From sequence record LR756508.1: a DNA stretch of 64,000 nt. The stretch is one strand, 5' to 3'. This document shows positions 2,812 through 55,449 of the stretch, one piece after another. Each line of letters opens with the position of its first letter. Positions within the stretch are counted from its first letter, which is position 1. Position numbers and translations under genes: made by a program. The notes under the pieces are model-generated. The model was not told the origin of the DNA. It searched no databases and saw nothing but the letters and a program-made list of their open reading frames with translations.

Positions 2812-4743
2812 ATGGGCAAGACAATTGGAATTGACCTAGGAACTACGAACTCTGTTGTTTCTGTAATGGAAGGCGAGGAACCTGAGGTTATTGAAAATGA
2901 GGAAGGGTCTCGAACTACGCCGTCAGTCGTAGCATACAAAGACGACGGCGAGCGGCTTGTCGGCGACCCCGCTAAGCGACAAGCTATTACAAACCCTGAG
3001 AAGACAGTTTCTTCTATCAAACGCTTCATGGGAAGAGAGTATAATGAAGTGGATGAAGAAAGGGGTGAAGTGTCTTATGAAGTTGTGAAGGATGGCAATG
3101 GAATGGCGCGAGTAGAGGTAGATGGCGAACAGTATGCGCCGCAAGAAATTTCAAGTATGATCCTCCAGAAACTTAAGAAAACCGCCGAAGACCATCTCGG
3201 GCAGGAGGTCACGGATGCCGTAATTACCGTTCCTGCCTACTTTAACGAGGCCCAACGGAAAGCAACCAAAGAAGCAGGAGAAATTGCTGGTCTTAACGTA
3301 GAGCGAATCATAAACGAGCCGACCGCAGCTTCCCTAGCTTATGGTCTTGACGATAAGTCTGATCAAGTGGTTGCTGTATACGACTTAGGTGGTGGAACCT
3401 TTGACGTGTCAATCCTTGAGTTGGGCGACGACGTTTACGAGGTTCTCGCTACCTATGGCGATACTCAACTCGGGGGTGACAACTTTGATCAAGAGCTTAT
3501 TAATCACATGGCCGACGAGTTTGAAGCTAAGCACGGAATTGATCTTCAAGACGATCCTATGGCCCTGCAGCGGCTCCGAGAAGCCGCAGAGCAAGCAAAG
3601 ATCGAGCTTTCCAGCACCAAAACGACGAACGTCAATCTTCCATTTATCACGGCTACCGACAATGGTCCCGTTCATTTGGACATTGATATCACGAGAGCGG
3701 AGTTCGAAAATATGATCGGTGGCCTCGTAGAGGAGACCATTCCTCAGATGGAGAAAGCCATGAACGACGCCGAAGTTTCAAACTCCGACATTGATGAAGT
3801 AATTTTTGTTGGAGGCTCAACTAGAGTGCCTCTCGTTCAAGAGAAAGTTGAAGACTTTTTTGGGCAACAGGCAAATAAGTCCGTAAACCCTGATGAAGTT
3901 GTTTCTCTTGGAGCTGCTATTCAAGGAGGAGTTCTTTCTGGAGACGTTGATGACGTTCTTCTTTTGGATGTTACTCCTCTCGATCTTGGAATCGAAACTA
4001 TGGGTGGCGTGAAGACGACGCTTATTCCTGCCAACACTACTATTCCAACGCAGGAGACAGAAACATTTACTACCGCCGCAGATAACCAGCAGTCGGTGGA
4101 AGTTCACGTCCTGCAAGGAGATCGTGAAATGGCGAGAGACAACCGGACGTTAAGTAAGTTTCACCTGACTGGCATTCCTCCTGCTCCCCGAGGTACTCCG
4201 AAGATTGAGGTTTCGTTTGATATCGATGCCGATGGCATTCTCTCGGTAACGGCTGAAGACCAGGAGACTGGCAAAGAGCACTCAATTGAAGTCGAGGCTT
4301 CTAGTGGCTTGTCTGAAGATGAAATTGAAAAAATGAGGGAGGAAGCCGAGAAGCACGCCGAGGAAGACGAACGTCGAAAAGAGCGTGCCGATACGATCAA
4401 CGAAGCAACCTCACTTAGTTACAGCATTGGACAGGGACTTGATGAGTGGGGCGATCAAATCTCCGATGAAAAGAGGGAAGAAATCGAGTCTCTTAGAGAG
4501 GAGTTGGATGAAGCCCTTGAAACTGCCTCTGCAGATGAAGATATAAGTGAGGTCGAAAACACGATGGAAGACTTGCAGGAGGTCTACAAGTCCGTCGGTC
4601 AAGAAATCTATGGCCAGCAAGCCGCTGGTCAGCAGAGAGCTGCAGGGCCTCAAGCTGAAGCTGCTGGCCAAAGTGCCCAACAAGCAGGTCAAGAAGTAGA
4701 TGATGAAGACGTGACCGACGCCGACTATGAGGTAGTCGATTAA
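2812..4743 (+). CDS. dnaK: Hsp70 chaperone DnaK
   Basis: [37 protein letters not shown] motifs; full length. Confidence 0.98.
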
Positions 4744-4768
4744 ACTTAGAACTGGCCGAGTGGGATTC

Positions 4769-4800
4769 AAGGTGGTGGGTTTCCACCACCTTTTTTGTTT
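4769..4800 (+). terminator. intrinsic terminator after dnaK
   Basis: AAGGTGGTGG-GTTT-CCACCACCTT hairpin followed by a T tract. Confidence 0.85.
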
Positions 4801-4822
4801 GGCTGTTCTTCAAAGATCAGAT

Positions 4823-4849
4823 GGAACTTCTTTATGCAGCGCTGGTTAA
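4823..4849 (+). promoter_or_regulatory. ECF-sigma-like promoter GGAAC-N17-GTTAA
   Basis: Same motif and spacing at four intergenic sites. Confidence 0.45.
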
Positions 4850-13796: not shown

Positions 13797-14063
13797 ATGC
13801 CTGTTTCCGAATACCTCGTTGTAAGTGATAAAAGCAACATAGTAGGTAAGGGGAATGGAGTCATTGAAGCCCTGCGGGATGCGGGTTTGAAAGTCACCGA
13901 AGCTGCTCTCTCGCCTGATGAGGGCTTACGAGATCCTAACAACTTTCTCGTCGCCCATGCCTCCAAGAAACTAGAAGAGAATGATATACAAAACGAGACA
14001 TTTGAAGTAAAGGTGGGCGAGGGACTAGGAGTAGGCAGCTATTTTAAACTCTATCCTCAGTAA
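13797..14063 (+). CDS. hypothetical protein
   Basis: 88-aa ORF. Confidence 0.6.
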   Translation: MPVSEYLVVSDKSNIVGKGNGVIEALRDAGLKVTEAALSPDEGLRDPNNFLVAHASKKLEENDIQNETFEVKVGEGLGVGSYFKLYPQ

Positions 14064-14156
14064 ATTGAAAGGAAATTCGTTTTCAGTCTTTGGTAGCAAA
14101 TTGAACTGATCTTAAAGTCAATAACGCTATATAATTAAGAGAAGCGTGGAAGTTCA

Positions 14157-14227
14157 TGCTTGGTAGCTCATTCTGGTTGAGCGTCGGCTCCTAAAGCCGA
14201 AGGTAGGTTCAATCCCTAACCGAGCAT
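14157..14227 (+). tRNA. tRNA with CTA anticodon (amber suppressor candidate; alternatively aberrant Arg-CCT)
   Basis: Acceptor TGCTTGG/CCGAGCA, D arm GCTC/GAGC, anticodon stem TCGGC/GCCGA around TCCTAAA, T arm GTAGG-TTCAATC-CCTAA; 2-nt variable region. Confidence 0.6.
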
Positions 14228-14232
14228 CATAA

Positions 14233-14324
14233 AAGCTGCGTACAGCAACCATTACCCTGGTTTCGTTGGTTCGAATCCAACCCAAAAAGAGCGGTGAAGC
14301 AAAACACCTAAAAAGCCGCAGCTT
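14233..14324 (+). ncRNA. clamp cassette A (degenerate permuted tRNA-like)
   Basis: AAGCTGCG/CGCAGCTT stem, TACAGCAA, T arm GTTGG-TTCGAAT-CCAAC placed before a GGTG/CACC hairpin. Confidence 0.7.
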
Positions 14325-14530
14325 GATATTCATTTCTTTTAAATCATTTCTCAAAAAAAATGAAAATGCCTGCAGGTCCAAGTCCTAAAGAGGTCAAATA
14401 TTCCAAAAAGGCTAATAAATATCTATGTGAAGAAAAAGAAAGCAATTTAAACTCTGAACCTCTCAACTTTGTAGACCTGCAGCTCTTCACTGAACAATTG
14501 GAGATTTTGAACAAAAAATATAAATAGCTC

Positions 14531-15229
14531 ATGTCACAAGACACATCTAACTTTTCATCTAGCTTAAAAAATCACTTCAATCCATTTACAGGCGTAGCAA
14601 AATTAGCTGCAGAGAAGATTGAAAGTATTGAAGGTTATACTGAAAAATCACCTTCAAAAATCAACGGGAGCTGGTATCAAGCAAAAACACACGTCATTGA
14701 TGAACCTAAAAACGATCAAGACGGTGATTTTATTGACAAGGTATTTTTAAACTTAGATCAGCATATCCAAGAAAATTTCCAAAACGAAAACATTTACGTT
14801 ACCGAAATTGACATTCAGTATGCACTTGCAAGTGAGAACGGCAGTGAGCCAGATTTTCAAAAGTTCGATGGCGTTATTGTTCGCCTGATTGTTGAAAATG
14901 ATGAATATAAAGCTGACCTGCAGGAAGTAGGATCTGTTTCTGACGTTGAAAACCTGCTTAGAGAGCACGACTCAAAACTCAAAGAAAAAAACGACTTTTC
15001 AATTGACGTAGGATATGGATTTGGAGAGTTGGGTCTCGATGAGCAGCTTGAAGATATAAAGGTTGATAATCAGTTGGGTTTTAAGGGTGATAGCTGGACC
15101 GGCTTCTATCTTGGGTTTCGTGCGAATGATGATGCAGACAGCTTGGAAGACGTATCTTCCATTGACTATGAACTTAAATCTAGAAAATTCGTTCGGGAAG
15201 ATGATGGTCAGGTCTACGAGGTAATATGA
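14531..15229 (+). CDS. hypothetical acidic protein
   Basis: 232-aa ORF. Confidence 0.7.
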   Translation: MSQDTSNFSSSLKNHFNPFTGVAKLAAEKIESIEGYTEKSPSKINGSWYQAKTHVIDEPKNDQDGDFIDKVFLNLDQHIQENFQNENIYVTEIDIQYALASENGSEPDFQKFDGVIVRLIVENDEYKADLQEVGSVSDVENLLREHDSKLKEKNDFSIDVGYGFGELGLDEQLEDIKVDNQLGFKGDSWTGFYLGFRANDDADSLEDVSSIDYELKSRKFVREDDGQVYEVI

Positions 15230-15452
15230 GGTTTATGTCAACGACTGAGTTGGTATAAAATTTTTTCTTTTTGAGAAAGAAGAAAACTATATGAACGAAG
15301 AGTGACCTGTGCTTTCCTTGGAGTTTCTAAAGATACAAATAGTATTAAAGAAAAGTGTAAGACTCTCAGAAAAAAATAAAATTGAAGCTACGAGAGACAG
15401 TATTTAAATCAATGACTGTTAGGTGTTGAAATGTAACTTAGACTGAAATAAA

Positions 15453-15803
15453 ATGGGGACTCCTAAAGGGTATAAAGTTCATAAGTTGTATAAGCTGAAT
15501 GGCAGTGAAATTGAATCAGTCAAAATCGAGTTTGACGAGAGAAATAAACACCTGTACAATTTCGCAGTTTCTCATCCCGAGTATTTCGCCCAAGAACCAA
15601 TATCTGTAAAAGATGATAACCATCCTCACGGTCTAATCGCTGCGACATCCTTTTCTGAAAAAGCAGAAACTCTGATTCGCTCAAGACAAAGTATCTCATT
15701 TCAAGAAAATCCTTTTAAGATTCTAAAAGAAAATAAGGATTTGATAATACTCTTTCTTTCAGGGATTGTTTGTGCAGTTCTCTCATTATACTTCATATTT
15801 TGA
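15453..15803 (+). CDS. hypothetical protein with C-terminal TM
   Basis: 116-aa ORF. Confidence 0.6.
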   Translation: MGTPKGYKVHKLYKLNGSEIESVKIEFDERNKHLYNFAVSHPEYFAQEPISVKDDNHPHGLIAATSFSEKAETLIRSRQSISFQENPFKILKENKDLIILFLSGIVCAVLSLYFIF

Positions 15804-15868
15804 AGACTTCGATTCTATTCTAAGTCTTAATGTAGAACAGAGGATAGGAGAACAAATCAAAATCATAT

Positions 15869-16078
15869 ATGAGTTTTTATGTAAATGACTGGAATGCTCC
15901 TTTCGTATCTCTTTTAGAAAACGAGATAAAATACTTGAAGGAACGAATTAGGTTTCCATTTGGAGTTCCTCAGAATATAAACTCAATCGTTTTAAAATAT
16001 AAGGAATATAAGGAAGAAGGTAGAAGTGAAGCAATGAGGAATTATAGAAGAAATAAAAAGGCTGATCCATTATTTTGA
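15869..16078 (+). CDS. hypothetical protein
   Basis: 69-aa ORF. Confidence 0.5.
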   Translation: MSFYVNDWNAPFVSLLENEIKYLKERIRFPFGVPQNINSIVLKYKEYKEEGRSEAMRNYRRNKKADPLF

Positions 16079-16124
16079 GTGACAAAAATAGTATAACTTG
16101 TTTCTTTCTTTTAAATTGTGTAAC

Positions 16125-16661
16125 ATGTCTGAATACAAGTGCTACGAGTGCGAGGTTGGATTGGATAAACATGACTATTGTGAAGACTGGTTTGGATACA
16201 CTATGGACACTGGATATATTTGTCCTTCTTGTGGTACCCAATACGAGAAAAAAGAATACTCTGAATTGAAGAGAAGAGATAAAAAGGAAGTTTGTCTGGT
16301 TGGAAGTCAGCGGCTTCGTTTAAAACATTTGGACAGCTTCGAAATCAAAGTTCCGTGGAACACTTCCGATAAAATTGAGTTTGAAGGAGAGGTATTTAAG
16401 AAATCTAGTGAAAAAACTAAAGATGGACATTTCAAATATAAGCTAGTTGACAGTATCTACGAAACTCAGATCAGTATAAAAAACTTGGAATCTCGTTACA
16501 TTCGGAAAAATGTAAATCAAAACACTCCTCCAAATTTCCTCGATTGGGAAGCTCCACATTCAGATGTAAGGATTGAAAATGATTCAATCTGGTCCTTCTT
16601 AGGATCAGTTAGCCTTAACGATCTAAATGAACTGAACTACTTACATAGGTATGACAGATGA
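16125..16661 (+). CDS. hypothetical protein with N-terminal Zn ribbon
   Basis: CYEC..CPSC; ORF track starts at 16098. Confidence 0.65.
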   Translation: MSEYKCYECEVGLDKHDYCEDWFGYTMDTGYICPSCGTQYEKKEYSELKRRDKKEVCLVGSQRLRLKHLDSFEIKVPWNTSDKIEFEGEVFKKSSEKTKDGHFKYKLVDSIYETQISIKNLESRYIRKNVNQNTPPNFLDWEAPHSDVRIENDSIWSFLGSVSLNDLNELNYLHRYDR

Positions 16662-16950
16662 CAGTAGTTTGATGGATGAAATTGACGAAAACGTTCACGT
16701 GCCTGTTTTCAAAAAACGACTTATGCAGAGAAAGATGGCTTTTCTGCATCAAGTTGACGAGGCACTTGCGGAGAAAGATATGACCGAGAAAGAACTTTTA
16801 GAGTTTGTTGGAACTGGTAAGTCTAATATGGCAGAGCTTTTTAGTGCCGATTACGACCTTTCTCTAAGAGAAATCACTCAACTTGAGTCAGCCTTGGATG
16901 AAGACCTGTTTAAAGTTAAGCGGAATATCGGACTGGAAGACGATAGTTAA
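16651..16950 (+). CDS. XRE/Cro-type HTH protein
   Basis: LAEKDMTEKELLEFVGTGKSNMAELFS..LSLREITQLESALD. Confidence 0.6.
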   Translation: MTDDSSLMDEIDENVHVPVFKKRLMQRKMAFLHQVDEALAEKDMTEKELLEFVGTGKSNMAELFSADYDLSLREITQLESALDEDLFKVKRNIGLEDDS

Positions 16951-16969
16951 TATATATTAATAGAAAGCA

Positions 16970-17023
16970 AGGCTGCTAACAGCAATGTATTGGATTCCTC
17001 TGTAAAAGGAAAAAATGCAGTCT
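16970..17023 (+). ncRNA. clamp cassette B (isolated Tyr-GTA anticodon stem-loop)
   Basis: AGGCTGC/GCAGTCT stem, TAACAGCAA, TTCCT-CTGTAAA-AGGAA. Confidence 0.75.
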
Positions 17024-17093
17024 GATGATCTTTCAGGTTATATTACTTTTTCTTAAGAATATTTCTATTTGTTTTTAAATATTGTAAGACTGA

Positions 17094-17209
17094 AAGCTAC
17101 CTGCAGCAATTCTCTTACCTCCTCGTAAAGGGAGAGGTTATGGGTTCGAGTCCCATCGCGCTGGCTTTTGGCGCGTAGCTCAATTGGTAGAGCGCTAACT
17201 GAGTAGCTT
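17094..17209 (+). ncRNA. clamp cassette C (circularly permuted tRNA, anticodon GTA or CGT)
   Basis: AAGCTAC/GTAGCTT stem; order is anticodon arm, T arm ATGGG-TTCGAGT-CCCAT, acceptor 3' CGCGCTG, linker, acceptor 5' TGGCGCG, D arm GCTC-AATTGGTA-GAGC. Confidence 0.85.
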
Positions 17210-17229
17210 GATGAGGTCTTTTATTTTTA

Positions 17230-17339
17230 AGGCTGCTAACAGCAGAACTTCTTATTATGGAAGCAGAAACACGTAGGTTCAAATCCTACCACTAGTGTGT
17301 GGCCGAGTCTGGTTAAGCATCTGCATAAAAATGCAGCCT
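17230..17339 (+). ncRNA. clamp cassette D (tRNA-Pro-like, opened at anticodon loop, 3-bp acceptor)
   Basis: AGGCTGC/GCAGCCT stem; TGGAA-GCAGA, T arm GTAGG-TTCAAAT-CCTAC, CAC-TAGT-GTG, D arm, then TCTGC which pairs with GCAGA. Confidence 0.8.
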
Positions 17340-17348
17340 GATATATTG

Positions 17349-17432
17349 TGGGTGAAGGAGTGGGACGACCCGCTCGATGACGTTTTCTACTGAGTTTTCT
17401 CGGGAGGACGTCATTCCGTAAGGATAAGCTCA
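17349..17432 (+). ncRNA. candidate four-way-junction structured RNA
   Basis: GAGTGGG/CCCGCTC, ATGACGT/ACGTCAT, TCC-GTAA-GGA, closing TGGGT/GCTCA. Confidence 0.4.
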
Positions 17433-17437
17433 TGAAA

Positions 17438-17512
17438 GCGGCAGTAGTTCAGTTTGATCAGAACACCGCGATGCCACTGCGGAAGTCGTGAGTTTAAATC
17501 TCGCCTGCCGCT
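17438..17512 (+). tRNA. tRNA-Gly(GCC), atypical D and T loops
   Basis: GCGGCAG/CTGCCGC acceptor, CCGCG-ATGCCAC-TGCGG, T loop TTTAAAT. Confidence 0.8.
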
Positions 17513-17684
17513 CTTTTCTTACCTATTAAAGACAAAACAACATGAAATTAAAGTTTAACATTCGTAAGCCAAATTTGAGAGGCACTGACGAGCCAAGAAA
17601 AATCGACAGGAAAAATGTAGTTGCTGCCGAGTCTTCTTCGGCTTGTAGTAGAAAGAAAAAGAAAAAAGAAGATTCAAAACAAAA

Positions 17685-17759
17685 GCGTCGGTAGTTCAAT
17701 TTGTAGAACATCTGATCTTTCCGATCAGAAGGTTGGAGGTTCAAATCCTCCCCGTCGCT
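17685..17759 (+). tRNA. Arg-type tRNA body with a 9-nt anticodon loop (identity undetermined)
   Basis: GCGTCGG/CCGTCGC, TCTGA-TCTTTCCGA-TCAGA, GGAGG-TTCAAAT-CCTCC. Confidence 0.6.
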
Positions 17760-17851
17760 CATTTGAATAGTTTTTGTAGCTGTTTATCAATAGTATTAAA
17801 AATAAGTTTTTTTGATATGGAAATTGATGTAAGGTAAAGGAAGATGGTTCC

Positions 17852-18259
17852 GTGGAGGCTAAGTCATCCTTCAAGCAACTTCTTAGTAGAGAGAAAAACA
17901 AGAGCCTGCTATCTGCAGGTTTGAGTCAAAACGAGCTTCCGTTCCATTGGAAAATGGTTGAACTTCCAAGTTTTCTTTATGATGGTGAGCCATACACGGC
18001 TAGAGCAACAAGAATTGATGTTAATGGAAGTCTTCTTGACGATTTCTTTAATGTCCTAAAAAAAGAGGTAGCCGAGGAAGATCTTAATAAGGAAGTTAGA
18101 GGTGTCTATAGAAGCGTCTTGGATAGCGTGTGGGATGAAGTGACTGATAATCTTTCTGAGATGCACAGCGAAGATGAAATGATTGGCTTCTACGAATTTG
18201 ATCTGGCTGACGTGGATGGACAAAAGATTCTACTTCTGCGGTATGCCGTGATCGATTAA
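17852..18259 (+). CDS. hypothetical protein
   Basis: 135-aa ORF. Confidence 0.65.
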   Translation: MEAKSSFKQLLSREKNKSLLSAGLSQNELPFHWKMVELPSFLYDGEPYTARATRIDVNGSLLDDFFNVLKKEVAEEDLNKEVRGVYRSVLDSVWDEVTDNLSEMHSEDEMIGFYEFDLADVDGQKILLLRYAVID

Positions 18260-18320
18260 ATTTTTCTTCATGGAACAGTATGTATATTCACACATTGAGT
18301 TAGAGTGACTTTGATGGGTA

Positions 18321-18380
18321 AAACTGCTAACAGCAACGCTGATTTTTTACCTTATCATTCACCAGGTAAAAAAGCAGTTT
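18321..18380 (+). ncRNA. clamp cassette E (single 10-bp hairpin)
   Basis: AAACTGC/GCAGTTT stem, TAACAGCAA, TTTTTTACCT-TATCATTCACC-AGGTAAAAAA. Confidence 0.75.
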
Positions 18381-18415
18381 GATGATCCCAATTTTTTTTA
18401 AACAAGTTTAACCTT

Positions 18416-18495
18416 GGAGATATGATCTAGTCTAGTCTAGGATGCGAGTTTGTCAAACTCGATGTCCCGAGTGCAAATCTCGGTGTCTCCGCCAT
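18416..18495 (+). tRNA. tRNA-Asp(GTC), encoded CCA
   Basis: GGAGATA/TGTCTCC, CGAGT-TTGTCAA-ACTCG, T loop TGCAAAT, ends GCCA. Confidence 0.8.
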
Positions 18496-18760
18496 ATTAT
18501 GCACTTTGATAAACTTCGGACTTGGCATGCGAGCGTGCTTAAACCGAGGCACGAGAGGCTTCCGTAGAAGCCTTAGTAGGTTTCCAGTAACCCAAAACGT
18601 AGAGCCCTTTTTGTTAGTATTGTCTTAGAGAGGCAAGCGGCAATGAGAGGAATTCCCATACTGGAATCCTCCGACTGCGTTCCGAAAGGCAGGCCCTCTC
18701 GAAGGAGTGGGCGTACCAGAGCCTCCAGGCAAGAAAGTCAAAAAGGGAAAACTGGAATAA

Positions 18761-18832
18761 GAGGCAGTAGTTTAGCTGGCAAAACGTTTGGATGCCATCC
18801 AGAAGTCGCTGGATCATTTCCAGCCTGCTGCT
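18761..18832 (+). tRNA. tRNA-Gly(GCC), second degenerate copy
   Basis: GAGGCAG/CTGCTGC, TTTGG-ATGCCAT-CCAGA, T loop ATCATTT. Confidence 0.6.
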
Positions 18833-19101
18833 CTTTTGATGAAGTAACAAAGTTTCTGCATTTTATGGCCTCTCCTCAAAATATACAAGAAGTATTTAAT
18901 GCTTCCAGCAAAATAGACAAGCAGCTTGAGGGCATACGGCCTTGTCGATCACACGCGATTCCACGGGGGGTTTCAGAGTCGGACCAGTTAGCGAACGATC
19001 AAGAAGAAAAATGCAAGTCGAAAAGTTCTGGAATGCATGCTGTCCTACGTAAGAGGCGGGAAGTTCCTGCAAAACTTCAAACAGTCGGGAAGTTTTAATA
19101 T

Positions 19102-19184
19102 CGCGGAGTAGAGCAGTCTGGTGTGCTCACTTGGTTCATGTCCAAGAGGTCGTCTTTTAAACGGTTCAAATCCTACCTCCGCTA
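19102..19184 (+). tRNA. initiator-type tRNA-Met(CAT) with an insertion in the T stem
   Basis: CGCGGAG start with C1 mismatch, CTTGG-TTCATGT-CCAAG, T stem GT[CTTTTAAAC]GG/CCTAC. Confidence 0.6.
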
Positions 19185-19198
19185 CACTTAAAAGCTTA

Positions 19199-19316
19199 AG
19201 GCTGCTCACAGCAAATCCTATATATTTTTTCCACATAAGGAAGAGATATGGGTTCGAGTCCCATCGGGCTGGAGTTTGGCGCGTAGCTTAACTGGTAAAG
19301 CTCTAATATGCAGCCT
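19199..19316 (+). ncRNA. clamp cassette F (circularly permuted tRNA, anticodon CAT)
   Basis: AGGCTGC/GCAGCCT stem; TTTTC-CACATAA-GGAAG, ATGGG-TTCGAGT-CCCAT, CGGGCTG-GAGTT-TGGCGCG, D arm GCTT-AACTGGTA-AAGC. Confidence 0.85.
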
Positions 19317-19322
19317 GTTTCT

Positions 19323-19399
19323 GGTCCCGTGGCCGAGTCTGGTTAGGCGCTTGTCTGCAAAACAAGTTTTTGACGTTAGTTCAAATCTAACCGGGACCT
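19323..19399 (+). tRNA. tRNA-Cys(GCA)
   Basis: GGTCCCG/CGGGACC, CTTGT-CTGCAAA-ACAAG, GTTAG-TTCAAAT-CTAAC. Confidence 0.88.
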
Positions 19400-19451
19400 C
19401 TTTTTTGTGTCTACTAAAAACATTTACCATAATCCAGCTCTCCTTTAGATC

Positions 19452-19739
19452 TTGACATGCAGCCAAAAAAGAGCAAATTTGAGAAAGTTTGTCAGAAACT
19501 CTGATCAAGACCTTAGCTCTATAATAGAATCCTTAAAAAACGAAGAGGAGATCGGGGGACTATTCTACTCAAAAAATACCGATCAAGTAACATTTCTTTC
19601 TCTCGCTAGTCGGAAGTCTTCTAACTTAAACCCATCCAAAAATGAAAGGATTAAGGTAAATGCCGTAAATAGATTGAAAAAGAGTGAAGTTCTAAACACT
19701 CTCCAAGAAATCAAACAAACACAGGATGGAAAGCGTTAA
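19452..19739 (+). CDS. hypothetical protein
   Basis: 95-aa ORF. Confidence 0.5.
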   Translation: MTCSQKRANLRKFVRNSDQDLSSIIESLKNEEEIGGLFYSKNTDQVTFLSLASRKSSNLNPSKNERIKVNAVNRLKKSEVLNTLQEIKQTQDGKR

Positions 19740-34859: not shown

Positions 34860-36833
34860 ATGAGTGAAGAATCCGATTCAGTAGTAGAAAATTTCGGTAG
34901 AAATCTTACTGAATTAGCTAAGAAGGGCGAACTTGATCCGGTTATTGGTCGAGAACAAGAGATCAAGAGAGTCTCGCAGGTTCTGGTTCGTAGGAAGAAG
35001 AATAATCCCGTCCTTATTGGGAGTCCTGGCGTTGGAAAGTCGGCAATAATCGAGGGTCTTGCAAAAAAAATTGTCCAAAGAGATACAAATCGCTCCCTTT
35101 TTGATGTTGAAATTGTAGAGTTAAATTTGACATCCCTTGTAGCAGGAACAAGATACCGAGGGCAGTTTGAAGACCGAATGAGAGCAGTTATCGATGAGCT
35201 TGAAAATGAAGAGGACAAGCTTCTTTTCATCGATGAACTTCATACGATTATGGGAACAGGCCAGGCGAGAGGTGGACTGGATGCGTCCAACATGTTAAAA
35301 CCTGCGCTCGCGGACGGAAGGCTTCAATGCATCGGTGCAACAACCTTGGAAGAATATCGGAATATTGAAGATAATGGTGCCCTAGAGAGGAGGTTTCAAA
35401 AGGTAGTTGTTGATCCATCCAGCGAGGAGGAAACTAAAAACATCTTACGAAATATTCGGCAATACTACGAAGACTTCCACAATGTAAAGTATAGCGATGA
35501 AATTATTGACCGAGCCGTCCAGCTTGCTGCAAGATATATTACAAACAGGTATTTTCCCGATAAGGCGGTCGATATCATCGATGAGGTAGGCTCTCGTGTA
35601 AATATTGAAAACATCGAGCCTCCTGAAAAACTTATTGAGATTGAAGAAAAATATGATGAACTTGAAGAAGAAAAACAGGAGGCCGTGTCTGAGCAGGAGT
35701 TTGAAGCTGCTGCTGACCTGCGAGATAAACAGGAGCAGCTTGAAAATCTCTATGAACAAGAAAAAGAAAACTGGAAAGAGGTAAGAAATGAAAACTACTA
35801 CGACGTAAAGGAAGATGATATTGCAGAAGTGGTTTCTATGATTACCGATATTCCAAAAGAAAAGATTTCTGCAGACACGAAAGATAAGGTTCTCGGGCTC
35901 GACAAGAGAATGAAAGAACGTGTAGTTGGACAGGATCGAGCTATCGAGACCGTGACAAGTGCCATGAAAAGAGCCACGAGCGGTATTAAAGACCCTGATC
36001 GCCCGATTGGCACTTTTCTTTTTCTGGGTCCCACCGGGGTGGGGAAAACTCTGAGCGCTAAAGTTCTTACCGAAGAGATCTTTGAATCTCAAAAGAATCT
36101 TGTTCGGATTGACATGAGTGAGTACCAGGAAAAGTTTGAATCTACAAAACTCATGGGATCTCCTCCTGGTTACGTTGGGCACGAAGAGGGTGGCGATCTT
36201 ACCGAAAAGGTTCGTAGAAATCCGTACTCGGTCGTTCTACTTGATGAAATTGAGAAAGCCCACCCTGATATTTTTAATACCCTCCTGCAAATCATGGACG
36301 ATGGGATCATGACCGATGGAATGGGCCGAGAAGTTGACTTTACGAACACAATCCTCATCATGACCTCTAATGTTGGAAGTGAAGAGCTTGTATCAAGCGG
36401 TTCGGACATCGGGTTTAGTCCAGGAGATTCAGGTGACCCACTTTCTTATGAAACTATCAAGACAAAAGTTGAAGACAAGCTCGGTGACACATTTAAACCT
36501 GAGTTCCTGAATAGGTTAGATGACGTTGTAATCTTCAATGCTCTTAAAAAAGATCACATTAGAGAGATCATTGACATCGAGCTTGAAGACCTTCGAGATC
36601 GCCTAGATCTCCAAGAGATTACTTTGAACATCACTGATGGAGCTAAAGACGTATTGATTGAAAAAGGATATGACATGGAGTATGGAGCTAGGCCCCTCAA
36701 AAGGACGCTCCGAAAGCAAATTGAAGAGCCACTTTCTGATATGATTATCTCTGAAGATGTCGATGAAGGGGACGAAGTTCGAGTTAGAAAGAGAAGAAAC
36801 GAAATGGAAGTTGAAATTGATGTCAATCCTTGA
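34860..36833 (+). CDS. ClpC/ClpE-type Hsp100 ATPase lacking the N-domain
   Basis: Two AAA+ modules (GSPGVGKS; GPTGVGKT), UVR-like QEFEAAADLRD, GSPPGYVG, YGARPL. Confidence 0.9.
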   Translation: MSEESDSVVENFGRNLTELAKKGELDPVIGREQEIKRVSQVLVRRKKNNPVLIGSPGVGKSAIIEGLAKKIVQRDTNRSLFDVEIVELNLTSLVAGTRYRGQFEDRMRAVIDELENEEDKLLFIDELHTIMGTGQARGGLDASNMLKPALADGRLQCIGATTLEEYRNIEDNGALERRFQKVVVDPSSEEETKNILRNIRQYYEDFHNVKYSDEIIDRAVQLAARYITNRYFPDKAVDIIDEVGSRVNIENIEPPEKLIEIEEKYDELEEEKQEAVSEQEFEAAADLRDKQEQLENLYEQEKENWKEVRNENYYDVKEDDIAEVVSMITDIPKEKISADTKDKVLGLDKRMKERVVGQDRAIETVTSAMKRATSGIKDPDRPIGTFLFLGPTGVGKTLSAKVLTEEIFESQKNLVRIDMSEYQEKFESTKLMGSPPGYVGHEEGGDLTEKVRRNPYSVVLLDEIEKAHPDIFNTLLQIMDDGIMTDGMGREVDFTNTILIMTSNVGSEELVSSGSDIGFSPGDSGDPLSYETIKTKVEDKLGDTFKPEFLNRLDDVVIFNALKKDHIREIIDIELEDLRDRLDLQEITLNITDGAKDVLIEKGYDMEYGARPLKRTLRKQIEEPLSDMIISEDVDEGDEVRVRKRRNEMEVEIDVNP

Positions 36834-37477: not shown

Positions 37478-38488
37478 ATGAAAGAATCGATTAACAAGGA
37501 GAAGAGTGCCATCACCATCACCGAAGAAGCAGAGGAGGCCGGAGAGTCTGTTCATCTCCCTGAAAACTTGAGTCAAATTCGCAGGTTTATTCGAAACGAG
37601 GCTCCTGACCTTCTTCCCGATGGCTTGAAGATGAAAGAGTCGAAGTGGAAGACGTTGATTCGTTCCATTCTTCGGGGGAAGAACATCTTGTTTACAGGGC
37701 ACTCTGGCTGCGGGAAAACCATCGCTGCCATGTCTGCAGTTCGCGCCTTGAAGCGAAAGTTTTTTTACTTTAACCTTGGCGCAACCCAGCGACCGCGAAC
37801 AAGCCTGATCGGAACTCGCGAAGTTGAAGATGGATCGACATACTTTTCTCCTTCCGTTTTCGTGGAAGCCATTCAAACTGAAGGGGCAGTAATCCTTCTC
37901 GATGAGCTTTCACGGGCGCACCCTGAAGCTATTAACATTCTCCTTACTCCTCTCGATCCGAAGCAGCGCTACCTGCGACTTGACGAGTCCGACGAGGAGG
38001 ATACTGTAAAGGTTCACGATAGCGTTTCCTTTGTCGGAACTGCCAACATTGGAAACGAGTATACTGCGGCACGGCGGATCGACAGGGCCATGTGGGATCG
38101 GTTCACGGTTATTGAAATGGATCTTCTCGGGCGAGAAGAAGAAAAAGATCTTATCCTGGAAACCTACCCCGAGTTGAAAGAAGAAACAGCCGCCAAGCTC
38201 GCTCGGATTGCGGAGCAAACGCGAGATCAAGCTCAAAGTAGCAGTCCCGAGGTTGAAACAATTATTTCTACTCGACAAAACCTGGAAGCCGCTGAAATGA
38301 TTCGGGACGGATTGTCGCTTGAAGAATCCGCTGAGGTAGCTTACTACCCAAACTACGATAAGGAAGGTGGAGTCGATTCTCCCCGAAACTACGTGAAGAA
38401 AGTTGTGCAGCGGGAAATTGATGATGAAAGCGACGATGAGCTATTCTCAAGTCGAGACATCGAGGAAGCTCCGCGCCGCAATAATTAA
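37478..38488 (+). CDS. MoxR-family (CbbQ/NirQ-like) AAA+ ATPase
   Basis: GHSGCGKT, ILLDELSRA, TANIG, AMWDRF. Confidence 0.88.
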   Translation: MKESINKEKSAITITEEAEEAGESVHLPENLSQIRRFIRNEAPDLLPDGLKMKESKWKTLIRSILRGKNILFTGHSGCGKTIAAMSAVRALKRKFFYFNLGATQRPRTSLIGTREVEDGSTYFSPSVFVEAIQTEGAVILLDELSRAHPEAINILLTPLDPKQRYLRLDESDEEDTVKVHDSVSFVGTANIGNEYTAARRIDRAMWDRFTVIEMDLLGREEEKDLILETYPELKEETAAKLARIAEQTRDQAQSSSPEVETIISTRQNLEAAEMIRDGLSLEESAEVAYYPNYDKEGGVDSPRNYVKKVVQREIDDESDDELFSSRDIEEAPRRNN

Positions 38489-38508: not shown

Positions 38509-40407
38509 ATGAAGCCTACCACTAAAAAATCCCAAAACTACTCCGATTGGTGGCTCGATGACATTACCAAGCGGAGCGTCAGAAAAGCCAGAAATGGCAA
38601 GAGTCAGTCGGAAAAAGACCTTGCCGCGCTTGCTTCCGTCAAGAGGTCCATAGCACAGTTTGTCCACATTCTTACGGGAAAGAGGCTGCGCGTGAAGTTC
38701 AAGGAAGAAGGCAAGGAGTCTTTCACCGACGGCGAGACCGTGGTTGTTTCTTCGGACATCGGTCCAGAGACTTACGATCAAACTGTCGGAATTGCCCTCC
38801 ACGAGGGCTCTCACATTGTGAAAACGGACTTCTACATCTTCAAAAACATTGAAGATTATATTCCAAGTCACATCGAAGACTTGGCTGACAAGAAGTTCGG
38901 AGAAACTGAGTTTTTGGAGCAAGTTCTCCATAAAATTCTAAATTACGTAGAAGACAGGCGGATCGATAATTGGGTGTTTTCTACCTCGCCTGGATACAAA
39001 GGCTACTACCATTCGATGTATGAAGCTCATTGGCACAACGAGAAGATTACCGAGCGCCTCAAGTCCGACGACTTTCGCGATGAGACGATGCAGTCCTATA
39101 TGTTTCGCCTCATTAACCTCACGAACGATGCAGGCGATCTGGATGCGTTGAACGGGCTCCGCGAGATCCATGATAGAATTGATCTCGATAACATCGCTCG
39201 TCTCCAAAGCACCGAAGATGTGTTGGAAGTCTCTCAAGACATCTTGGAGATTATTATCGAGAACGTCAATGACATTGAGTTCGAGGAAGGGGGCGACGTG
39301 AAGTTTGTTCCTGGCGAAGGCGATGGAGATGGCGATCCCATCGATTGGGACGAGCTTTCTGAAGAAGAAAAAGAAGCTCTTAAAGATGCCATTGAAGACC
39401 AGATGGACTTTTTGGATGGTAACATTGATAAAGAGCCAATTGATCCTGAAGACGCTGAAGAGCTTGAAGCTTTGGAAGACGCTGGCGTCTCTACGCACGA
39501 GGTGGGTGAGGGAACCGGCAATCCTCATGGCATTGATTGTGTAGTTATCGATAAGCTTACCGAGAGGCTTGTTAACAAGAGCAAGTTCCCGATCCTAAAA
39601 ACCTATGAGGTCGATAGGTCCAAAGAAGCCGTAAATCAAGGCGTTGTTCTTGGAAGGAAGCTCGGCAAAAAGCTCAAAGTTCGAGACACAAAACGAAATA
39701 CGAAATTTTCCCGCAGAAAAAGTGGACGATTGGATCAAGCTCTTCTCTCGGAGGTAGGCCACACCGAGCGCCTTTTCTATGAGGAAATTATTGATGAGTA
39801 CGATGACGCATTCGTTCATATAAGCGTGGACGCAAGTGGCTCGATGTCAAATGACAAGTGGAGCGAAGCCATGAAAACGTGCGTGGCCGTAGCTAAGGCT
39901 TGCTCTATGATTGGAAACGTTCGGGTCCAGATTTCTTTTCGGTCAACAACGAGCGCTGGATTTTCTTCGGGGGAAACCAAGCCTCTTATTTTGATGGCTT
40001 ACGATTCCGATGAAAGTTCGTTTAATCACGTCAAGAAGTACTTTCCGAACATTAATTCTGGAGGCACGACTCCTGCTGGCCTTACATTTGAGGCCATTCA
40101 AGAGAAAATTCTTCTTGTGAAAGACGACGAAGATGGGTATTTCGTAAACCTGTCTGATGGTAGGCCAAACTTTAGCGCAGATGATTTCCAATACGGATCT
40201 GAAAACGGGGCTGCTCACACTAGAAAACAGGTCCGGAAAATCAAAAAGAAAGGAATTGAAGTCGTCGCTTACTTCATTTCGTCAGGAAGTAGCAGCGTTG
40301 ACTCCGCATTTAGCAGGATGTATGGCCCTGACGACTACTACATCGATCCATCAAATATCACCCAAGTCTCGAAAACTCTAAACAAAAAGTTCCTTAAAGA
40401 AAAGTGA
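38509..40407 (+). CDS. VWA-domain protein with N-terminal HExxH domain (MoxR partner)
   Basis: ALHEGSH, NYVEDRRI, VDASGSM MIDAS, GGTTP, LSDG. Confidence 0.85.
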   Translation: MKPTTKKSQNYSDWWLDDITKRSVRKARNGKSQSEKDLAALASVKRSIAQFVHILTGKRLRVKFKEEGKESFTDGETVVVSSDIGPETYDQTVGIALHEGSHIVKTDFYIFKNIEDYIPSHIEDLADKKFGETEFLEQVLHKILNYVEDRRIDNWVFSTSPGYKGYYHSMYEAHWHNEKITERLKSDDFRDETMQSYMFRLINLTNDAGDLDALNGLREIHDRIDLDNIARLQSTEDVLEVSQDILEIIIENVNDIEFEEGGDVKFVPGEGDGDGDPIDWDELSEEEKEALKDAIEDQMDFLDGNIDKEPIDPEDAEELEALEDAGVSTHEVGEGTGNPHGIDCVVIDKLTERLVNKSKFPILKTYEVDRSKEAVNQGVVLGRKLGKKLKVRDTKRNTKFSRRKSGRLDQALLSEVGHTERLFYEEIIDEYDDAFVHISVDASGSMSNDKWSEAMKTCVAVAKACSMIGNVRVQISFRSTTSAGFSSGETKPLILMAYDSDESSFNHVKKYFPNINSGGTTPAGLTFEAIQEKILLVKDDEDGYFVNLSDGRPNFSADDFQYGSENGAAHTRKQVRKIKKKGIEVVAYFISSGSSSVDSAFSRMYGPDDYYIDPSNITQVSKTLNKKFLKEK

Positions 40408-51724: not shown

Positions 51725-52876
51725 ATGGAAAAGCCTTTGGAAATTCAAACTTTTTTGAGAGGTGAGGGCTCTATGAGTGAACTTAAGAAAGAGCCCTACA
51801 ATTTGAAGATTAATACCGATGACAAAGGAAGACGCATTCTTTTCAAATACAACCAGATCAAGTCAGATCTAAGTCTTAAAATTACGAGAGAAGCAAGAGG
51901 ATTAATTCTTGATCGAAAAAACAACTGGAAAGTGGTAAGTTTTCCTTTCAAAAAGTTCTTTAACTGGGAAGAAGACTTTGCTGTTGATATAGACTGGGAA
52001 ACTGCTAAAGTGTATGACAAGTTGGATGGAACTTGCTCAATCATTTATTTATATGATGGCGAGTGGATAATGCATACTCTTGGAACCGTCGAGGGCGGCG
52101 GACCTGTCCACACCGACGAGTTAATCTCACTTCCTTTTGATGGAACCTTTTCCGATCTTTTCTTTCACGCCTGGAAGAAAGAGTATGGAGAAGAAAAATT
52201 TGAGTCTTTAAACAAAGACTACATCTACGTTTTTGAGCTCATGACTCCATACAACATCGTTGTAAAGGAACACAGCGATTATAAAATCTCTCTACTTGCC
52301 GTAAGAGATCGTAAGACATTAAATGAACTGCCAGTTGAACAATTTTCCGACCAGTTTAAAACTCCAAGAACCTATAGTTTTTCGGATTTGACTCCCGAAA
52401 AATTAAAGAAAACACTGGAGGATTTTCCTCCTGATGAAGAAGGGTACGTGGTCCGGGACGATAACTTTAACAGGATAAAGTTAAAGAATCCTGGCTACGT
52501 AATGAAGCATAGAATGAAAAATAATGCCGTTAATAGAAAACACGGCATTTTAGAAATTGTTCTTAACGAGGAAGAAGATGACTTTATATCCTCTTTTCCC
52601 GGCCTAAAAAAACAGATCGAAGGCGTCAAAGATGACCTGGATGAACTGATTGGTTTTTTGGAGCAGAAGTATCAAAACTTTAATGGTGAAAGCGTAGACC
52701 CACAGGACAGTCAAGAACGAAAAGAGTTTGCCCTGAAAGTTCAAGATCAAATTCCATCAAGTCTGCAAGGGTATATGTTTGCCAGGCTTTCAACCGATGA
52801 TAGCTTCGAAGAAATACTAAAAGACTCTAACGTTTCAAATGTAGCCACCTCTTTAAATAATTTCAACGATAGGTAG
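51725..52876 (+). CDS. T4 Rnl1-like RNA ligase
   Basis: REARG, FPFKKFFN, motif I KLDG, FELM, EGYV, IKLKN. Confidence 0.85.
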   Translation: MEKPLEIQTFLRGEGSMSELKKEPYNLKINTDDKGRRILFKYNQIKSDLSLKITREARGLILDRKNNWKVVSFPFKKFFNWEEDFAVDIDWETAKVYDKLDGTCSIIYLYDGEWIMHTLGTVEGGGPVHTDELISLPFDGTFSDLFFHAWKKEYGEEKFESLNKDYIYVFELMTPYNIVVKEHSDYKISLLAVRDRKTLNELPVEQFSDQFKTPRTYSFSDLTPEKLKKTLEDFPPDEEGYVVRDDNFNRIKLKNPGYVMKHRMKNNAVNRKHGILEIVLNEEEDDFISSFPGLKKQIEGVKDDLDELIGFLEQKYQNFNGESVDPQDSQERKEFALKVQDQIPSSLQGYMFARLSTDDSFEEILKDSNVSNVATSLNNFNDR

Positions 52877-53236: not shown

Positions 53237-54460
53237 ATGTACACAAAAACGTTTACAGAGGTTGCAAAAGAAAATGGTTTTGGTGACATTAATGAAACTG
53301 AAGACGAGAAGTTTTCTACTGTAAAAGATTATGTAGTAAATGTTTATAAGACCCATGAGGAAGTTGGCTTTGTGGACAACCTGGACCATCCACATACATC
53401 TGATATTTCTGATGTCAACCACTCGACATATTTAAAGGAAGAGGCAGTTCAAGATGTGACTGTCTGCTATACGCTCTGGCAAAATCCTCTCTACGTCAAA
53501 CTTCTTTATCTTTCTTTTTTATCTCAGATTCTATACAGTGACATTTTGAATGTCAAAAAATTTGTGATCGTTACTGATTACAAACTTGAACCACTCGTTT
53601 GGGATGTCTTTCGTCCATTTGCACAGGATCATTCAGGAAACTTCGAGTTAGAAGTGAAAGCAGTTGACAGGCAAAGAGTGGTCTGGTCTGATGTTGCTCC
53701 AAACGTAAGAATGCCTGTAAGATTGAATAAATATGTCGTTTCCACGTTTGATGACTTAAGAAAAACTGATCTACTTGTTTTATCTGACTGCGAAAGCTTT
53801 ATCTTTGGAGAAAAAAGTCAGATTTATAGTCAACTACATTCGCAGTATTCGGAATCAGATAATTTTCCAGTTCTCGGCTGCGAAGAAAATCACAACAGCT
53901 CTTCCGTCTTCCTGCAGCGGCGAGAAGATCTGGCTAATATGATGCACGACAATGAAGAGTATGTCAACTGGTGTGCAAAAAGATTGGAGGTATCTAAAGA
54001 TAATTTTGTAGATAAAGTAGTAAAAAGAAACAATTGGTTTTTAACCTGCTGGTTCGTATTTGATAATGAAAAATATAAGCTCAATGATTCTCACTGGCAA
54101 GATTACGTTGAATGGTCAAACCTTTACTCGATGTACTGCGACGAGTCCATTTATTTAACTTATGGATGGTGCGCAGAAGATTACACAGTTAAAGACGTTA
54201 AAGTTATTAACGGGTTAGAATTTATTCATTCTCCTTACTGCGAGTCTTTTTTTGAACAAGACGAGTATGATAAAACAGGAATTGTCCATCCGCTGCACGG
54301 AAAATGGGCTGAAGATTTCTGGGTTCATGATTTCTATGACTCGATTCAAGATGGATTCGAGGCGGAGTTGAAACAAGCTATGAGTGAAAAAGTAAGCTTA
54401 AGGGAGTTACTGCCTCAATATAAAGATAGCTACTATACTGAGCCAATTCAAAACGAATGA
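53237..54460 (+). CDS. GT-A-like protein (family with 49844 and 55451)
   Basis: KLLYLSFLSQILYSDI, LSDCE, CDE, HP. Confidence 0.5.
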   Translation: MYTKTFTEVAKENGFGDINETEDEKFSTVKDYVVNVYKTHEEVGFVDNLDHPHTSDISDVNHSTYLKEEAVQDVTVCYTLWQNPLYVKLLYLSFLSQILYSDILNVKKFVIVTDYKLEPLVWDVFRPFAQDHSGNFELEVKAVDRQRVVWSDVAPNVRMPVRLNKYVVSTFDDLRKTDLLVLSDCESFIFGEKSQIYSQLHSQYSESDNFPVLGCEENHNSSSVFLQRREDLANMMHDNEEYVNWCAKRLEVSKDNFVDKVVKRNNWFLTCWFVFDNEKYKLNDSHWQDYVEWSNLYSMYCDESIYLTYGWCAEDYTVKDVKVINGLEFIHSPYCESFFEQDEYDKTGIVHPLHGKWAEDFWVHDFYDSIQDGFEAELKQAMSEKVSLRELLPQYKDSYYTEPIQNE

Positions 54461-55449
54461 TCACTCTTGCCAACGAGTTTTCTCGCGCTATCGATAAAAT
54501 GCGAGATACACCTCAACCTAAACAATATCATCCCGAGGTTTGGGTGTGGAATCACGAATCTCTCGTTTTTTATAGCATTCTAAACAATACTTCTCACCTC
54601 TCTAATACTCAACAAAAAGAACTCTTGTGGACCGCTCTTTTCCACGATCTGGGGAAAATTGATAAAACCTGGTATAGAGAAAAGAAGGAACGTTACGTCT
54701 CTTACGGTCACGAAAAAGCCGCACTTCCTTATTATGATGCCACAAAAGAAGCACTTGTTGATAAAGACCTTCGACCTGAGGTAATCCGTTTTCTTATAAG
54801 ACAGCATATGAAGCCGAAATTTATAGATAGGATGAATGAAGGCACGGTCGAAAAGTTAAAAAAAGAAGCGAACAATATTAGTGAAGACGTTTGGAATCTC
54901 CTCATGGAATTTGCCGAACACGACGATGCCTCCAAGCTTTACAAGAATTCTGACAAAACCGATAGATACGAAGCTCAATGGCTTTTTCATAACTTCTGTG
55001 AAAAAGCCATAGAAAAAATCAATTTAACTTATTCTAACGAAAAGGACAGTTTCACTGGTGAACTGTTTATTCTGAGAGGTGCATCTGGATCCGGAAAATC
55101 AACGGTTGCTCAGCTTCTTGAAAATAATGGAGCCTATCAAATTTCTGCTGATCAGTTTTTCATAAGAGAGGACGGTAAGTATCGTTATGACGGGAGCAAA
55201 ATTTCAGAAGCTCACGACTATTCCAAACGTAGAACTGAAGATGGAATGGTTGCTGAGAGAGAAACCATTGCCGTTCATAACACCTTTACCGAAGACTGGC
55301 AGATGATCTATTATTTTTATCTGGCAGCAAAGTATAACTACAGGGTTCATACCTTACTGGTTGAAAACAGGCATGAAAGCGATACTATACATAATGTTCC
55401 CGAAAACAAAATTGAAGATCAGAGGGAAGAAATGGAACTGAAACTTTAG
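54457..55449 (+). CDS. HD-domain phosphoesterase fused to a polynucleotide kinase (HD-Pnk-like)
   Basis: YHPE..H, LFHDLGK, GHE, HM; LRGASGSGKS, SADQF, VHNTF. Confidence 0.82.
   Translation: MITLANEFSRAIDKMRDTPQPKQYHPEVWVWNHESLVFYSILNNTSHLSNTQQKELLWTALFHDLGKIDKTWYREKKERYVSYGHEKAALPYYDATKEALVDKDLRPEVIRFLIRQHMKPKFIDRMNEGTVEKLKKEANNISEDVWNLLMEFAEHDDASKLYKNSDKTDRYEAQWLFHNFCEKAIEKINLTYSNEKDSFTGELFILRGASGSGKSTVAQLLENNGAYQISADQFFIREDGKYRYDGSKISEAHDYSKRRTEDGMVAERETIAVHNTFTEDWQMIYYFYLAAKYNYRVHTLLVENRHESDTIHNVPENKIEDQREEMELKL

Follow-up and report, generated by a model that had tools for sequence, protein, structure and literature searches.

Background

What are the short, stem-closed elements that lie among the tRNA genes in the last 64 kb of LR756508.1, the 484,177-bp genome of an uncultured phage whose record carries no annotation? 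This stretch of 64,000 nucleotides (nt) is hereafter called the window (window position = record position - 420,177). A first-pass annotation of the window had described six such elements as one modular RNA family with no named relative, and had proposed that they either process or circularise permuted tRNAs or display anticodon loops as decoys for host nucleases. We find that these elements, here called cassettes, are indeed modular RNAs: their closing helix covaries, their CAGCA motif is invariant and their cargo is built from tRNA parts. They are set in tRNA arrays, and the family is coupled to genes for a protein with the Pfam domains DUF2828 and DUF7788. The fold of this protein is predicted to be Ro60-like. 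It is likely, in our judgement, that the cassettes are Y-RNA-like small non-coding RNAs that partner this protein (DUF2828 plus vWA domain), the common handle docking the RNA and the cargo acting as a tRNA surrogate. Ro60 with its Y RNAs is a classic and poorly understood system, of which YrlA alone is catalogued among bacterial RNA families.

Results

Cassettes in the phage genome and conservation of the handle

All six elements were recovered at their annotated positions, each on the plus strand (cassettes A to F; Table 1). The whole 484-kb genome was scanned for a 7-bp stem, 3 nt, CAGCA and a complementary 7-mer within 190 nt followed by G; the scan returned the six window copies, a seventh cassette and two likely chance matches. 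Within the window, the pattern GCTRCNNNCAGCA occurred five times, against 0.10 expected from shuffled sequences. All seven cassettes lie inside tRNA arrays that span the record ends and contain 32 distinct tRNAs and a transfer-messenger RNA (ARAGORN). Their proximity to normal tRNAs, as noted earlier, was borne out: cassette A starts 5 nt past a tRNA with the anticodon CUA (14157-14228), and cassette F lies 14 nt past tRNA-Met (which ends at 19185) and 7 nt before the next tRNA (which starts at 19323). The seven have a handle in common: their ends pair in a covarying helix of 7 bp, the junction reads NN-R-CAGCA-R, and the 3' strand is followed by G.

Table 1. Cassettes of the 484-kb phage and related forms in other loci (window coordinates unless a locus number, L, is given)
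Feature	Position	Strand	Terminal helix (5'/3')	Junction	Trailing base	Cargo and flanks
Cassette A	14233-14325	+	AAGCUGC(G)/(C)GCAGCUU	(G)UACAGCAA	G	degenerate tRNA-like piece: T arm GUUGG-UUCGAAU-CCAAC and one hairpin
Cassette B	16970-17024	+	AGGCUGC/GCAGUCU, one G-U	UAACAGCAA	G	5-bp hairpin with 7-nt loop CUGUAAA, anticodon-loop-like, triplet GUA
Cassette C	17094-17210	+	AAGCUAC/GUAGCUU	CUGCAGCAA	G	variable-arm hairpin, T arm, acceptor stem capped by a loop, D arm; outer helix AAGAC/GUCUU and a U-run
Cassette D	17230-17340	+	AGGCUGC/GCAGCCU	UAACAGCAG	G	hairpin, T arm GUAGG-UUCAAAU-CCUAC, short closed stem, class-II-type D-arm remnant
Cassette E	18321-18381	+	AAACUGC/GCAGUUU	UAACAGCAA	G	long hairpin with 11-nt loop; then outer helix UGGG/CCCA and eight U
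Cassette F	19199-19317	+	AGGCUGC/GCAGCCU	UCACAGCAA	G	variable-arm hairpin, T arm, closed acceptor stem, D arm
Seventh cassette	L002 22209-22263 (record ~71.2 kb)					hairpin with loop UUUUUUU; between tRNA-Gly and tRNA-Ser
Non-permuted module-in-tRNA forms	L232 3456-3570 and 3711-3825; L279 3181-3623; L314 ~4300-4830
Leader-type cassettes	L312 1928-1970; L235 and L236 3950-3989; L240 just upstream of 4001

Since the variable cargo defeats simple alignment, the family was searched with pattern-plus-pairing scans and controls. Viral contigs were scanned with a 14-mer, the matches of which were mostly chance or belonged to a different long inverted-repeat element (see below); among the others were contigs of 108-183 kb with tRNA arrays that hold several cassettes each, with the same junction and quite different helices (UAGAUGC/GCAUCUA, AGGUUAC/GUAACCU, UGGAUAC/GUAUCCA and AGGAUGG/CCAUCCU). 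No protein similarity was detected between the tRNA regions of the window phage and those of two of these loci (L012 and L059). Homologs are present outside this genome, and 21 cassettes on 7 contigs were aligned. In this alignment, 98% of the cells of the terminal helix were paired and six of the seven pairs had double-sided changes, in agreement with the compensating stem variation described in the first-pass annotation; position 5 was an invariant U-A pair. The covariation score was reached by none of 500 shuffles, and pairing fell to 19-42% when the partner columns were slid. Because the members of the alignment had been collected by requiring pairing, an unbiased test was also performed that started from the motif alone, that is, from every CAGCAA in the loci holding tRNA arrays. 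The 7-mer at the true offset had a downstream 7-bp partner at 21 of 68 sites, compared with 5/68 and 6/68 at shifted offsets and 0/39 on the opposite strand.

The alignment also refines the motif. CAGCA itself is invariant as had been claimed, whereas the sixth base, given earlier as A, is A or G (CAGCAG in cassette D); the base preceding CAGCA is a purine, and on either side of the motif 20 of 21 copies have a purine. In the flanks beyond the helix nothing is conserved but one G, so that the proposed 3' signal GAT(G/A) is specific to this phage and shrinks to a single G in the family; GAUGA, which follows some copies, is likewise not conserved. The ribozyme reading suggested by CUGAUGA-like tails and by UAAC, as in twister, was rejected: the tail is not conserved, and no Rfam ribozyme matched. 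Hammerhead, twister, twister-sister, hatchet, pistol and HDV-like models gave no match at E <=10 in 14000-19600. The promoter and terminator scan gave nothing beyond shuffled expectation. Relatives were also sought via the neighbouring UvrD-like helicase, and the 80 loci obtained were too distant, with cassette matches at chance level.

Some observations were made alongside. The tRNA directly before cassette A reads the stop codon UAG (ARAGORN label, Pyl), and a similar CUA tRNA is present at 7047-7122 of L059, an unrelated cassette-bearing phage contig; these CUA tRNAs hint at stop-codon suppression or recoding. The intergenic stretches 18495-18760 and 17340-17437 of the window, within the tRNA array, are G+C-rich and structured-looking; they matched nothing in Rfam at E <=10 and may represent additional non-coding RNAs. 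The different recurring element that shares the 14-mer (L017, L024, L034, L040, L049, L056, L066, L102, L111 and L117) has the layout AAACGGCTGCTAACAGCA, a long covarying inverted repeat, an A+T-rich loop of ~70 nt and an end ...CTGC-NNN-ACGTTAG.

Coupling of cassettes to DUF2828 genes

Bacterial genomes were scanned with the commonest handle. Twelve matches were obtained, which is near chance, and one of them, on a Bacillota contig, is intergenic and clearly genuine. At this locus, a small cassette with the loop CUGCUAA is followed in tandem by a tRNA-like cassette (AAGACAC-UAACAGCAG...GUGUCUU-G), and the two stand directly upstream of a gene for a 492-amino-acid protein with the Pfam domains DUF2828 and DUF7788. 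An alignment of DUF2828 led to at least 545 viral loci, and counting was done on 80 of them; a strict cassette was counted when it lay on the same strand within 800 nt upstream of the DUF2828 gene. Strict cassettes were found upstream of the DUF2828+vWA gene in 74 of the 80 loci (1-5 per locus; median gap between cassette end and gene start, 104 nt). Their density upstream of the gene was 2.31/kb, against 0.0097/kb in the rest of the same loci (~240-fold), and control helicase loci had 0.008 cassettes/kb. When the loci were dereplicated, about 12 clusters and three further contexts gave 15 in all, and a cassette or a close variant was beside the gene in 14. The same arrangement was seen in a Paraclostridium prophage-like region and in a 341-kb scaffold. 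The view of the cassettes as an RNA family stands; their tie to a Ro60-like DUF2828+vWA gene was not visible from the window.

A promoter-like site precedes the cassette array in several DUF2828 loci. In the leader-type copies (Table 1), exemplified by TCGATAC-TAACAGCAT...GTATCGA-GGAG, the 3' strand of the helix runs into the ribosome-binding site of the DUF2828 gene, and the protein may autoregulate its own translation via this cassette. In the E. coli phage wV8, the DUF2828 gene is directly upstream of a 22-tRNA array that contains four cassettes, one of which has a T arm, a closed acceptor stem and a D arm. Note that three tRNA-OTHER (pseudo) features are annotated in this Felix O1-like tRNA array (L315, 7039-7126, 8352-8422 and 11027-11102). 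DUF2828 homologs number at least 700 records in the phage collection, many of them annotated as Ro-like RNA-binding protein, and the family also occurs in prophages and giant viruses. We found no paper on DUF2828 in bacteria or phages.

The 484-kb phage has its own DUF2828/DUF7788 homolog, which lies outside the window (L002 36208-36675 and 36695-37756; record ~85.2-86.8 kb). In a six-frame translation search, the two pieces, searched separately, gave E values of 2.4e-25 and 1e-62 against the Bacillota protein and aligned to its residues 18-144 and 149-492, respectively; the break between them falls in a predicted loop. This two-piece gene may be split, frameshifted or decayed to a pseudogene. 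No close relatives of the phage's own DUF2828 piece were found in viral contigs. The gene just upstream (L002 35607-36120) resembles by eye that of a RelA/SpoT-type HD hydrolase (HD...LHDTVEDT), and its product is possibly an alarmone hydrolase.

Predicted fold of the putative partner protein

The protein consists of the helical-repeat domain DUF2828 followed by the vWA/MIDAS domain DUF7788, and the metal-site motif DTSGSM is kept, also in the C-terminal piece of the phage's own homolog. Pfam reported DUF2828, DUF7788 and a weak vWA match only, even at E <=10. The AlphaFold2 model (pLDDT, 83.6; pTM, 0.79) had a single match in the PDB below E 1e-3, namely 9KOP, over the full length (E, 1.6e-7; TM, 0.56/0.59). 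This entry is the Ro60 homolog of Thermus phage phiLo, which has two Y-like RNAs as ligands, their genes lying upstream of its own, and complexes with the host PNPase (PMC12135203). The Ro60 sequence profile detects 9KOP. Among predicted viral structures, the model matched DUF2828 proteins of jumbo phages and giant viruses, and also the TROVE protein of a crAss-like phage. As judged from the model, the putative partner protein has the Ro60 architecture, that is, a predicted helical-repeat ring and a vWA domain with a metal site.

tRNA-like bodies and hairpins as cargo

The cargo is of two kinds, either a tRNA-like body (variable arm, T arm, closed acceptor stem and D arm) or a short hairpin. 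tRNA-like bodies lacking the anticodon arm are found in cassettes C and F and, in degenerate form, in A and D; cassettes B and E and the seventh copy carry a hairpin, and hairpin-only cargo makes up about half of the family. We surveyed 83 unique short cassettes with 79 hairpin loops. Seven-nucleotide loops numbered 38, and 28 of these fit YU-NNN-R-N, the pattern of an anticodon-like loop, typically on 5-bp stems (CUGUUAA, CUGCUAA, CUUUUAA and CUGUAAA, the last of which is that of cassette B). In one orthologous cassette of near-identical phages, the middle triplet is GUU, GCU or UUU and the flanks are fixed. Other cargo loops, including those of cassette E and the seventh copy, are not anticodon-like.

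Non-permuted RNAs of ~115 nt are interleaved with cassettes upstream of DUF2828 genes (Table 1). They have acceptor, D and T arms in the normal order and are called tRNA by Infernal, and their anticodon loop is replaced by a hairpin and NNACAGCAA. The same module thus occupies the anticodon position in permuted and non-permuted forms, which fits a tRNA origin of the cassettes and argues against a role as tRNA precursors. None of the non-permuted forms was convincing in the 484-kb genome. Annotation pipelines would list such RNAs as intron-bearing tRNAs or pseudo-tRNAs. In L217, another cassette-bearing contig with a tRNA array, isolated fragments of a T arm and acceptor and other odd tRNA-like pieces lie between normal tRNAs (minus strand, for example ~3790-3830 and ~3520-3590), and the tRNA genes there encode their own CCA ends.

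Comparison with YrlA and other known systems

The earlier statement that the scaffold matches no named family needs correction. In a permissive Rfam scan, cassettes C (43.8 bits; E, 1.7e-7) and F (27.5 bits; E, 9e-3) matched YrlA (RF02553) below threshold and end to end on the model. Cassettes A, B, D and E had no YrlA match, and no family of Rfam 15 other than YrlA matched the cassettes. Only tRNA-like members are recognized; among the DUF2828-adjacent cassettes, L238 3707-3807 was also a sub-threshold match. The published layout of YrlA begins with a 5' motif, continues through a variable arm, a T arm, a loop-closed acceptor stem and a D arm, and closes with a 3' strand complementary to the 5' end (PMC4201824), and the "permuted tRNA" of the first-pass annotation is this layout. 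The module order enclosed by the end-stem is complete in C and F, partial in A and D and absent in B and E.

Mycobacteriophage Bxz1, whose gp220 is a TROVE+vWA_Ro60 protein, was used as a yardstick for a canonical Ro60 locus. Its genuine YrlA, just upstream of gp220, scored 32.5 bits, lower than cassette C and likewise short of 69 bits, the curated gathering threshold. After this YrlA comes a small RNA that shares its handle and has only a hairpin. Among phage Y RNAs, scores under the threshold and a design in two flavours are therefore normal. The Bxz1 locus had no ACAGCAA cassette. No canonical Ro60/TROVE gene was detected in the 484-kb genome by tblastn with Bxz1 gp220, by a hidden Markov model (HMM) of 60 TROVE proteins or by the phage-collection search, and hence a TROVE gene within ~4 kb on the same strand, as expected of a YrlA, is lacking for the cassettes of this phage. 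The open reading frame 38509-40407 (632 amino acids) was considered as a hidden Ro60 and rejected, as it had only a weak C-terminal vWA match and no PDB sequence match. It follows a MoxR/CbbQ-type AAA+ ATPase gene (37478-38488), and the two are probably a NorQ/NorD-like pair rather than Ro60.

The cassettes resemble bacterial Ro60 (Rsr) RNAs YrlA and YrlB (RF02553; Chen et al. 2014, PMC4201824) in the pairing of the two RNA ends into a terminal helix, just inside which lies a short conserved motif, in the two flavours (tRNA-like module or simple hairpin), and in the tandem position upstream of a gene for a ring protein with a C-terminal vWA domain. They differ in the motif (GNCGAAN0-1G there, NN-R-CAGCA-R here), in the partner (TROVE+vWA_Ro60 there, DUF2828+DUF7788 here) and in number, one or two RNAs beside the gene in the Rsr systems and seven scattered through tRNA arrays in this phage; moreover, many short cassette cargos resemble anticodon arms. 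Phage phiLo (PDB 9KOP and 9L5Y; PMC12135203) likewise combines a ring protein containing a vWA domain with two partner RNAs (Yrl1 and Yrl2) encoded upstream of the gene. However, its protein, with only 17% sequence identity to the DUF2828 protein, can be recognized as TROVE by sequence, unlike DUF2828, and its RNAs carry a CGAA motif with no tRNA-like module reported. In the E. coli phage Bas63, the Ro60-like gp130, encoded directly upstream of tRNA genes, is reported in a preprint to counter the Ppl defence; the authors suspected Y RNAs among the annotated tRNAs and named none (bioRxiv 10.1101/2024.10.10.617714). The Ro60-like fold and the position directly upstream of the tRNA array are as in wV8, from whose locus we take gp130 to be probably a DUF2828 ortholog; the difference is that no RNA partner was identified for it. 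The small RNAs of T4, rnaC and rnaD (species 1 and 2), also lie at the end of a phage tRNA cluster, have an unknown role and, in the case of rnaC, end in a T arm and an acceptor strand; they lack the terminal helix with the ACAGCAA handle and a YrlA match, and were rejected as relatives on account of this different architecture.

Discussion

Proposed function and alternative explanations

We propose that the cassette RNAs would be transcribed together with the phage tRNAs, and that the handle (end helix, single-stranded NN-R-CAGCA-R junction and 3' G) is the putative binding site of the Ro60-like ring protein. If the cassettes work as Y RNAs do with Ro60, the RNA would be held on the protein by its handle, and the cargo of the docked RNA could recruit, tether or trap factors that recognize tRNAs, such as exonucleases like PNPase, tRNA enzymes or tRNA-targeting host nucleases. 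During infection, such a complex may serve RNA surveillance or repair, or else counter-defence.

Several observations weigh against this proposal. The Ro60 motif GNCGAAN0-1G is absent from all copies, which have NN-R-CAGCA-R instead, and the YrlA scores of C and F, below the gathering threshold as they are, derive mostly from the T and D arms. Pfam TROVE (PF05731) does not match the DUF2828 protein and the TROVE HMM likewise found nothing, while hhalign of DUF2828 against TROVE aligned only the metal-site region of the vWA domain, with a probability of 16%. The fold match to 9KOP is moderate (TM, ~0.57), and the classic Ro60 entries of the PDB were absent among the top 50 fold matches. As for the 484-kb phage, its DUF2828 gene is not beside the cassettes (the seventh copy is ~14 kb away and those in the window >80 kb) and is in two frames parted by TAA and 16 nt; with a stop and a frame change, it may be a pseudogene. 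In addition, most of the 80 associated loci are close relatives, which form the ~12 clusters at 90% identity.

The first-pass annotation favoured either of two roles. In permuted tRNA genes, which are known from Cyanidioschyzon merolae, some other algae and archaea, the order of the tRNA halves is reversed, 3' before 5', and the transcript ends are brought together in a helix; the complete tRNA is rebuilt by a bulge-helix-bulge cut and a circular intermediate. If the cassettes were such precursors, the helix would bring the ends together, and cutting, ligation by Rnl1 and HD-Pnk, and trimming would release working tRNAs. The T arm, acceptor strands and D arm of C and F do stand in permuted order with pairing acceptor strands, and the RNA-repair pair assumed in the annotation is encoded in the window (a T4 Rnl1-type ligase, 51725-52876, and a kinase, 54457-55449, with an HD domain at the N terminus and a P-loop kinase domain at the C terminus). 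However, a loop caps the acceptor stem; the flanks, unconserved but for one G, yield no anticodon arm; linkers of 17 nt and 9 nt part the helix from the tRNA-like core in C; and no bulge-helix-bulge motif is present. Half of the members have no tRNA body at all, the same module destroys the anticodon loop in the non-permuted relatives, and neither ARAGORN nor the Rfam tRNA model calls the cassettes. The identical layout in YrlA is not a tRNA precursor (PMC4201824). We regard the processing or circularisation of permuted tRNAs as unsupported and as the least probable of the explanations weighed here. The other role, in which the RNAs, alone or on the protein, would bait host tRNA-cutting nucleases with anticodon stem-loops and tRNA bodies, concerns function and is compatible with a Ro-like complex. 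In its favour are the anticodon-like loops on 5-bp stems, the exchange of the triplet between fixed flanks in near-identical phages, the counter-defence activity of the probable ortholog of Bas63 and the RNA-repair enzymes Rnl1 and HD-kinase of the window; on the other hand, many cargo loops do not resemble those of anticodon arms, each triplet change is a single substitution that could be drift, and the phenotype reported concerns Ppl, a system believed to target DNA and not tRNA. Decoys thus seem unlikely to us, though they deserve real weight.

Two further explanations were weighed. The cassettes might be ordinary Y RNAs that use the canonical Ro60 (Rsr) of the host with no phage protein, as the YrlA-like matches of C and F and the lack of a canonical TROVE gene in the phage would allow; this is highly improbable, given that GNCGAA is absent, that the canonical locus of Bxz1 is free of ACAGCAA cassettes and that the cassettes track DUF2828 genes instead. 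Equally improbable to us is that they are protein-binding operators or processing punctuation rather than stable RNAs, serving to autoregulate the DUF2828 mRNA or to guide the cutting of tRNA transcripts. The overlap of leader-type copies with the ribosome-binding site in several loci and the position of every copy between tRNAs point in that direction, but the window copies are far from the DUF2828 gene, no ribozyme family matches, and an operator would need neither elaborate, conserved tRNA-like cargo nor tandem arrays of up to five distinct copies.

Returning to Y-RNA-like partners of the DUF2828 protein, the kind of system is known, and the branch appears undescribed in its protein family, RNA motif, multi-copy dispersal through tRNA arrays and anticodon-like cargo. 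A speculative extension, to which we would give a low but appreciable chance, is that of a programmable display: one handle would present a changeable library of tRNA surrogates that trap, mislead or redirect host factors that read tRNAs, above all defence nucleases, with the loop triplet swapped quickly in an arms race and circular permutation of tRNA as an evolutionary route to new cargo. The finding points to a second, much larger Ro60/Y-RNA branch, whose partner family is still of "unknown function" in Pfam. It would explain stretches of tRNA arrays that are now without annotation or labelled as odd tRNAs or pseudo-tRNAs, would name the likely missing RNA partner of a counter-defence gene reported in an E. 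coli phage, and would provide natural examples of tRNA circular permutation. Standard laboratory strains suffice to test every step, since the system is present in Felix O1-like phages of E. coli K-12.

Other genes in the window

An IS605 OrfB/TnpB-type gene with helix-turn-helix, OrfB_IS605 and zinc-ribbon domains is present at 62698-63885. The phage also encodes full-length DnaK (Hsp70) and ClpB-like chaperones (2812-4743 and 34860-36833).

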